Shown piece after piece: positions 34,028-34,877 of a stretch of DNA of 64,000 bases. Source of the DNA: Utricularia gibba. Its lineage: Eukaryota; Plantae; Magnoliophyta. The notes under the pieces are model-generated. The model was not told the origin of the DNA, did no database searches, and saw only the letters and a program-made list of their open reading frames with translations. The stretch spans positions 1,302,001 through 1,366,000 of the forward strand of contig CM007989.1 of assembly GCA_002189035.1 (NCBI GenBank). Direction: 5' to 3'. How positions within the stretch are numbered: position 1 is the stretch's first letter; each line of letters opens with the position of its first letter. The position numbers and the translations under genes are program-made.

Positions 34028-34222
34028 ATGCTGCGCAGGAAGCCGACAAAAATTGAGATCAGAATCGAAGACAAAGAAGAACTCGAAGAAGCCCGTAAAC
34101 GCGCCGCCGCTGCTGCCACCACCGTGTCTTCGTCCTCCACATCCACCGCTTCTTCGCTCCTCCACTACTTCGATCGCTCATCCGCAGATCCCTCTTCCAA
34201 ATCCCACCGGATCGGCCTCTGA
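34028..34222 (+). CDS. CDC26: APC/C subunit CDC26 (64 aa), uORF of TTM3
   Basis: MLRRKPTKIEIRIEDKEELEEARK...SSKSHRIGL*, matching the plant CDC26 N-terminal motif and C-terminus. Confidence 0.93.
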   Translation: MLRRKPTKIEIRIEDKEELEEARKRAAAAATTVSSSSTSTASSLLHYFDRSSADPSSKSHRIGL

Positions 34223-34265
34223 TCAGTCTCAGTCTCCAATCACCACCGGCCCTCGAGAACTGCCG

Positions 34266-34877
34266 ATGGAGATCGAGGTGAAGCTCCGTCTCGTCAGCAA
34301 ATCCGGACATCAGAAGCTCCTCTCCGCCCTATCTCCGTTCCTCGTTACTACTCACCATCAACGTAACGTCTTCTTTGACGGATCCAATTCCGAGCTCTCA
34401 TCGCGGCGAGCCGTTCTTCGTATTCGTTTTCACGAGGAACCCGAAAGCCCTAAATCCTTCCTCTGCCTCAAATCCAAGGCCGTGATCGCAAATGGTGTGA
34501 GCCGCGCTGAGGAAGATGAAGAAGAAGTAGATCCTGAAACCGCGATGGCGTGCGTGGAGGATCCGCAGAGGCTGCTCAGCGTGGATTGGAGGGTCTTGAG
34601 GAGAGTGAAGGAAGAATTCGGCGTGAAATCAGGGTTCGTTGGCTTGGGGGGATTCAGGAACCTGAGAAACGTGCACCAGTGGAAGGGACTGAAGCTGGAG
34701 GTGGATGAAGTGAAGTATGAATTCGGCGAAATGCACGAAGTCGAGTGCGAGAGCTTGGAACCGGAGAAGGCTAAGGGGATGATCGAAGAGCTTTTCAAGG
34801 AGAATGGGATCGACTATTTCGACTCTGTTATGTCTAAATTTGCAGTCTTTCGAGAAGGGAAGATCCCATTCCCATAG
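34266..34877 (+). CDS. TTM3: Triphosphate tunnel metalloenzyme 3 (CYTH domain), intronless; 203 aa
   Basis: MEIEVKLRL (ExExK motif), HQRNVFFD, RRAVLRIRF, LGGFRNLRNV, LKLEVDE, SKFAVFR. Starts 43 nt after the CDC26 stop. Confidence 0.93.
   Translation: MEIEVKLRLVSKSGHQKLLSALSPFLVTTHHQRNVFFDGSNSELSSRRAVLRIRFHEEPESPKSFLCLKSKAVIANGVSRAEEDEEEVDPETAMACVEDPQRLLSVDWRVLRRVKEEFGVKSGFVGLGGFRNLRNVHQWKGLKLEVDEVKYEFGEMHEVECESLEPEKAKGMIEELFKENGIDYFDSVMSKFAVFREGKIPFP

Follow-up and report, generated by a model that had tools for sequence, protein, structure and literature searches.

The window analysed here, a stretch of 64,000 nucleotides from Utricularia gibba, contains a CDC26 ORF followed on the same strand by a TTM3 ORF, and we read this locus as an orthologue of the conserved plant CDC26-TTM3 bicistronic gene, in which one mRNA would carry both ORFs and TTM3 would be reached by leaky scanning. 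The probability that we attach to this reading is roughly 0.82. In Arabidopsis thaliana, CDC26 and TTM3 share a bicistronic transcript (Lorenzo-Orts et al. 2019, Nature Plants 5:184, as related in passages of PMC6973038, PMC7943633, and PMC11892635). Excerpts of reviews and later papers, including the same three, describe CDC26 as the essential partner in Arabidopsis. Similar excerpts state that the transcript undergoes nonsense-mediated decay, that translation of TTM3 raises CDC26 output, and that plants and green algae have both retained the bicistron; it is the short CDC26 ORF that exposes the transcript to nonsense-mediated decay (PMC11892635). Because the plant bicistron has been published and is conserved across plants and green algae, the window locus is an instance of a known system. 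The first-pass annotation of this DNA had taken the same position, calling the pair a rare eukaryotic polycistron that is not a new system and stating that the Arabidopsis proteins are translated from one bicistronic mRNA, and the passages of these sources agree with it on both points.

The locus consists of three adjoining parts:

34028 to 34222, plus strand: CDC26 ORF (first cistron), 64 amino acids plus stop, with ATG at 34028 and TGA at 34220–34222
34223 to 34265, plus strand: inter-ORF spacer, 43 nt, GC 0.60
34266 to 34877, plus strand: TTM3 ORF (second cistron), 203 amino acids plus stop, with ATG at 34266, intronless

The TTM3 ORF lies in frame +1 relative to the CDC26 ORF. The coordinates first given for the pair (34028–34877) and for the spacer (34223–34265) proved exact to the base, as did the 64-amino-acid length of an intact CDC26 ORF, and the accompanying claim of an intact, intronless TTM3 ORF on the same strand also held, with 203 uninterrupted codons and an end-to-end alignment to Arabidopsis TTM3 (AtTTM3). 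That the two ORFs are CDC26 and TTM3 in the arrangement of the Arabidopsis bicistron is supported by matches in Pfam and the PDB and by collinearity in every other plant locus fetched. The CDC26 ORF scored 37.6 bits against the Pfam family ANAPC_CDC26 (PF10471; curated cut-off 24.5 bits), and the TTM3 ORF scored 73.9 bits against CYTH (PF01928; cut-off 23.2 bits), so neither ORF is a product of chance.

The CYTH domain spans residues 2–182 of TTM3, and Pfam matched no other family within the 203 amino acids. The window protein is thus a single-domain protein of about 200 amino acids and lacks the additional kinase domain that TTM1 and TTM2 have. Against the AtTTM3 structures 3v85 and 5a5y it aligned over residues 1–201 to residues 1–210 (E ~6e-64), and this end-to-end alignment indicates a coding sequence without an intron. 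Eight AtTTM3 residues (Glu-2, Glu-4, Arg-52, Arg-54, Lys-76, Glu-90, Glu-169, and Glu-171) take part in metal binding, substrate binding, or activity (PMC4641920). All eight equivalents are kept in the window protein (E2, E4, R52, R54, K69, E83, E160, and E162), which also has K6, so that the N-terminal ExExK motif is present, as are the glutamates of the acidic patch, the invariant glutamates, and the catalytic arginine. The enzyme looks functional as a predicted tripolyphosphatase. With pN of about 0.15–0.24 against a saturated pS of about 0.81, the TTM3 ORF is, on these values, under purifying selection.

We found 316 plant relatives of TTM3, the best of them Lamiales proteins with 72–75% identity. 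A maximum-likelihood tree groups the window protein with its Genlisea aurea counterpart at a support of 81/90, a placement made tentative by the long branches of both. An exact look-up of both window proteins in public assemblies returned no record and no transcript contig of the same species. TTM3 is intronless in the window, Rehmannia, Coffea, Medicago, and Genlisea. The gene model in Erythranthe guttata (L010, 2001–3971) takes 1971 nt to encode 203 amino acids and is therefore intron-bearing.

DNA around TTM3 was fetched for comparison from seven Logan Lamiales contigs (L001–L007), Rehmannia (L008, L009), Erythranthe (L010), Coffea (L012–L014), Medicago (L015, L018), and Genlisea (L019). 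The CDC26-TTM3 pair is collinear in all eight other loci (L001–L007, Rehmannia, Erythranthe, Coffea, Medicago, Genlisea), and every fetched locus has a CDC26 ORF of 57–69 amino acids immediately before TTM3 and in the same orientation. That of Genlisea aurea (L019, 681–866) has only 57 amino acids. A region of about 57 kb in Coffea arabica (L012–L014; CM071901.1, 7209523–7265957) holds TTM3 three times over. The three copies encode the same protein, are each preceded by a CDC26 ORF, and share the same 300 nt before TTM3. Either the entire bicistron has been triplicated in tandem or the assembly has duplicated it.

The frame offset from CDC26 to TTM3 is 0, 1, or 2 depending on the species, and this variation means that there is no conserved overlap, frameshift, or read-through fusion. 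For the same reason we rejected as a real overlap or fusion an ORF of 274 codons that runs in the TTM3 frame across CDC26, from a TTG at 34053 to 34877. The TTM3 frame is open for seventy-one codons 5′ of its ATG, across most of CDC26, and by a rough estimate a stop-free run of that length has a chance of about 0.13 in C-rich sequence. Another plant's Logan protein (P0109, 275 amino acids) has the same kind of upstream extension. Given the varying offset and a sequence rich in C and poor in stops, we attribute the upstream-extended frame to chance plus a gene-caller artefact. The annotated Malus domestica protein P0064 (259 amino acids) runs from the CDC26 N-terminus straight into TTM3 and has both Pfam domains; the probable cause is a spurious intron in the gene model, by which the CDC26 stop codon is lost.

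Annotation of the first cistron is patchy. Among the eleven NCBI loci fetched (L008–L017 and L019), CDC26 was called in two, in Erythranthe GCA_051942635.1 and Medicago GCA_003473485.2, and older assemblies of Erythranthe and Medicago have no CDC26 call. The earlier remark that gene callers often miss CDC26 is well illustrated by these counts.

Initiation at the first AUG (34028) would yield CDC26, and ribosomes that scan past it would encounter no further AUG over 235 nt and would start at 34266 to make TTM3. We lean towards leaky scanning of this kind, rather than reinitiation, as the way in which TTM3 is translated. The CDC26 AUG has G at −3 and C at +4. The C at +4 is found in all loci, since the protein invariantly begins Met-Leu, and it makes for a suboptimal context. 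The 235 nt that separate the two start codons of the window are free of ATG in all frames. Taken by itself this absence does not stand as evidence (P = 0.11 in dinucleotide shuffles and 0.72 in synonymous resamplings of the same peptide). Across the spacers of seven loci there is one ATG against 6.8 expected (P ~0.006, with related spacers treated as independent), and none occurs inside any of the seven CDC26 ORFs. The single spacer ATG is that of Coffea, where a stop codon comes two codons further on. Of these ATG counts only the cross-species one is informative, and such ATG-poor spacers fit translation of TTM3 by leaky scanning. Two features go against this account: the ATG in the Coffea spacer, and the C at −3 of the TTM3 AUG in the window, where relatives have A or G and hence a stronger context.

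The same bicistronic mRNA might instead yield TTM3 mainly by termination and reinitiation after CDC26, which we consider improbable. The two ORFs are close together, and selection under reinitiation can likewise deplete AUGs around the first stop codon, the two mechanisms not being exclusive (PMC11892635). Against it, ATG is missing from the CDC26 ORF of every locus even far from the stop codon. The spacers are also short, 43 nt in the window and 12 nt in Genlisea, and 12–43 nt is a short distance for a 40S subunit to regain initiator tRNA. Reinitiation efficiency moreover drops with the length of the upstream ORF, here sixty-four codons, and experiments in algae favour leaky scanning over reinitiation (PMC11892635). 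Together, a first ORF of sixty-four codons, spacers of 12–43 nt, and avoidance of AUG across the whole region make leaky scanning the better fit, and a mixture of the two mechanisms is possible.

Leaky scanning has been demonstrated by mutagenesis for a set of green-algal bicistrons that includes CDC26_TTM3 of Chlamydomonas (PMC11892635). The window locus resembles these in its short first ORF, its short inter-ORF region, the scarcity or absence of AUGs before the second start, and the suboptimal context of the first AUG. It differs in that the mutagenesis was done in algae only, whereas the mechanism in the window is inferred from sequence features.

The spacer itself offers little beyond the absence of signals. 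A motif scan of 34223–34265 found no ATG, AATAAA, or TATA[AT]A, in agreement with the first-pass annotation, which had described a 43-nt spacer lacking any promoter-like or polyadenylation signal. An IRES-like or other structure in the spacer was considered and rejected, its minimum free energy being no better than that of shuffles (z = +0.99), and an Rfam search of the CDC26-TTM3 region gave no match. We also rejected a conserved spacer: alignment A2 shows conservation in the coding sequence on either side and in one short motif confined to the other Lamiales, and nowhere else. Spacer lengths were as follows:

Genlisea: 12 nt (shortest seen)
Medicago: 40 nt
window: 43 nt
L007: 59 nt
Erythranthe: 102 nt
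L001: 107 nt
Rehmannia: 114 nt
Coffea: 149 nt

Most other Lamiales loci have spacers of about 100–115 nt, against 43 nt in the window and 12 nt in Genlisea aurea. The motif, AACGGG...AGATTG, sits immediately 5′ of the TTM3 AUG in the other Lamiales, where it is conserved, and would have been lost or have decayed in the window and in Genlisea aurea. Lentibulariaceae are a family with compact genomes. A tentative suggestion, to which we give less than even odds, is that contraction of the spacer and loss or decay of the motif in this family either changed the ratio of CDC26 to TTM3 or reflect that no spacer element is required.

The signals and genes that flank the pair are these:

33960 to 33967, plus strand: predicted TATA box, TATAAATA, 68 nt upstream of the CDC26 start codon
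34878 to 35125 (end approximate), plus strand: predicted 3′ UTR with the only AATAAA, at 35093–35098
around 32636 to 33067, minus strand: ATP12-type gene
last coding exon ending at 35262, minus strand: sucrase/ferredoxin-like gene, convergent with TTM3

The element TATAAATA is the sole TATA[AT]A match in 33500–35400, and we infer from it a transcription start near 33990–33995 and a leader of about 35 nt. The only other nearby ATG, at 33967, falls inside the TATA box and so lies upstream of the predicted transcription start. The AATAAA is 216 nt past the TTM3 stop, a distance similar to that in relatives (+222 in L007, +252 in Rehmannia, and +258 in Medicago), and the poly(A) site would follow it. 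The predicted transcription unit thus runs from about 33990 to about 35120, or about 1.1 kb. Just 384 nt (34878–35262) lie between the stop codons of TTM3 and of the sucrase/ferredoxin-like gene that converges on it, so the 3′ UTRs of the two genes must abut or overlap.

Several other features of the window were noted in passing. Between the ATP12-type gene and CDC26 lies an ORF of sixty-one amino acids rich in His, Lys, and Glu (33342–33598, plus strand) that has no Pfam match and that is reminiscent of a KS-type dehydrin. A K-segment-like stretch, MDKVKDK, lies in a different frame, a difference that could reflect a short intron or a frameshift. The region 37200–37800 is very AT-rich (GC 0.15–0.20) and comes after a GC-rich ORF region at 36750–37200. 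A tRNA gene at 62703–62774 (plus strand) is the one feature of the entire window to pass an Rfam gathering score.

A single transcript carrying both ORFs is very likely in this genome, given the signal-free spacer of 43 nt, the conserved collinearity, and the published result in Arabidopsis. One promoter, marked by the predicted TATA box at 33960, would produce one mRNA of about 1.1 kb that ends after the AATAAA at 35093. Contig L007 (1218 nt) is built like a full-length bicistronic mRNA: a leader of 93 nt precedes CDC26, a spacer of 59 nt leads on to TTM3, and a trailer of 253 nt ends about 30 nt past an AATAAA; the Logan library may be RNA or DNA. Medicago L018 (1028 nt) likewise spans both ORFs, again from a library that may be RNA or DNA.

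Alongside the bicistronic mRNA, a second start site within the CDC26 ORF or the spacer might give rise to a monocistronic mRNA from which most TTM3 protein is made. The AT-rich spacer of some relatives (L001) does contain a TATA-like hexamer, but the CDC26 ORF and spacer of the window have a GC content of 0.54–0.60 and no TATA-like motif, and the 12-nt spacer of Genlisea leaves a core promoter no room outside coding sequence. Passages of the reviews also have Arabidopsis TTM3 transcribed into, and translated from, the bicistronic mRNA, and we regard an internal promoter of this importance as quite unlikely.

It is very improbable that CDC26 and TTM3 are separate monocistronic genes packed side by side, the first polyadenylated in the spacer and the second under its own promoter. 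The genome does look compact, as the 384 nt between the two convergent stop codons attest, but a spacer of 43 nt with neither AATAAA nor TATA cannot hold a poly(A) site plus a promoter, and in Genlisea 12 nt leave no room for separate signals of either kind. Collinearity also argues against two separate genes, since it holds across Fabaceae and Lamiales and, in published accounts, extends to green algae, as do the contigs L007 and L018, of RNA or DNA origin, that span both ORFs.

The product of the first cistron is a putative APC/C subunit. Residues 1–25 align to human CDC26 (E 7e-4; PDB 3hym, 4ui9, and others), 3hym being the CDC26-APC6 crystal structure and 4ui9 an APC/C structure. The conserved N-terminal segment (MLRRKPT...), the part crystallised with APC6, is present in the window protein. 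At the other end the protein finishes in ...RIGL and lacks the two-residue tail of most other plants examined; Genlisea aurea CDC26 likewise stops right after RIG(I/L). Comparison of the window with six other plants gave dN/dS of 0.15–0.22, by which measure the CDC26 ORF is under purifying selection. Such selection on both CDC26 and TTM3 lends indirect support to translation of the two ORFs. Synonymous differences are far fewer in CDC26 (pS 0.44–0.65) than in TTM3 (pS ~0.81). The low value could come from nucleotide-level constraint on the first cistron or from a shared GC-rich Ala/Ser codon composition.

It is hardly credible that the CDC26 ORF is a cis-acting regulatory uORF or a decaying relic whose peptide has no function: it is short, lies within what annotators would label the TTM3 5′ leader, and has a low-complexity Ala/Ser/Thr middle, but its dN/dS of 0.15–0.22, its Pfam score above the curated cut-off, the match of its N-terminal twenty-five residues to the human segment crystallised with APC6, and the rescue of Arabidopsis ttm3 mutant phenotypes by CDC26 expression (PMC7943633) all speak against this. 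Like the conserved-peptide uORFs (CPuORFs) of plants, it is conserved and sits in the leader ahead of a main ORF. Unlike them, CDC26 is a stand-alone complex subunit with its own Pfam family and not a cis-acting stalling peptide.

The locus matches the Arabidopsis bicistron in both proteins, their order, strand, and short spacer, in the position of CDC26 as a small upstream ORF, and in the intact key residues of TTM3; it differs in belonging to another species. Its local peculiarities appear limited to the shortened spacer and the tail-less CDC26, both common to Genlisea and consistent with a Lentibulariaceae origin. It is one more case of a conserved eukaryotic bicistron, real but ordinary, and its practical value is for annotation: CDC26 belongs at 34028–34222. 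The GC-rich spacer of 43 nt, together with the 12-nt spacer of Genlisea, gives modest comparative support to the idea that the spacer needs only to be free of AUG. If the suggested contraction of the spacer in Lentibulariaceae is true, the family would provide natural minimal-spacer variants with which leaky scanning could be separated from reinitiation for this land-plant bicistron.
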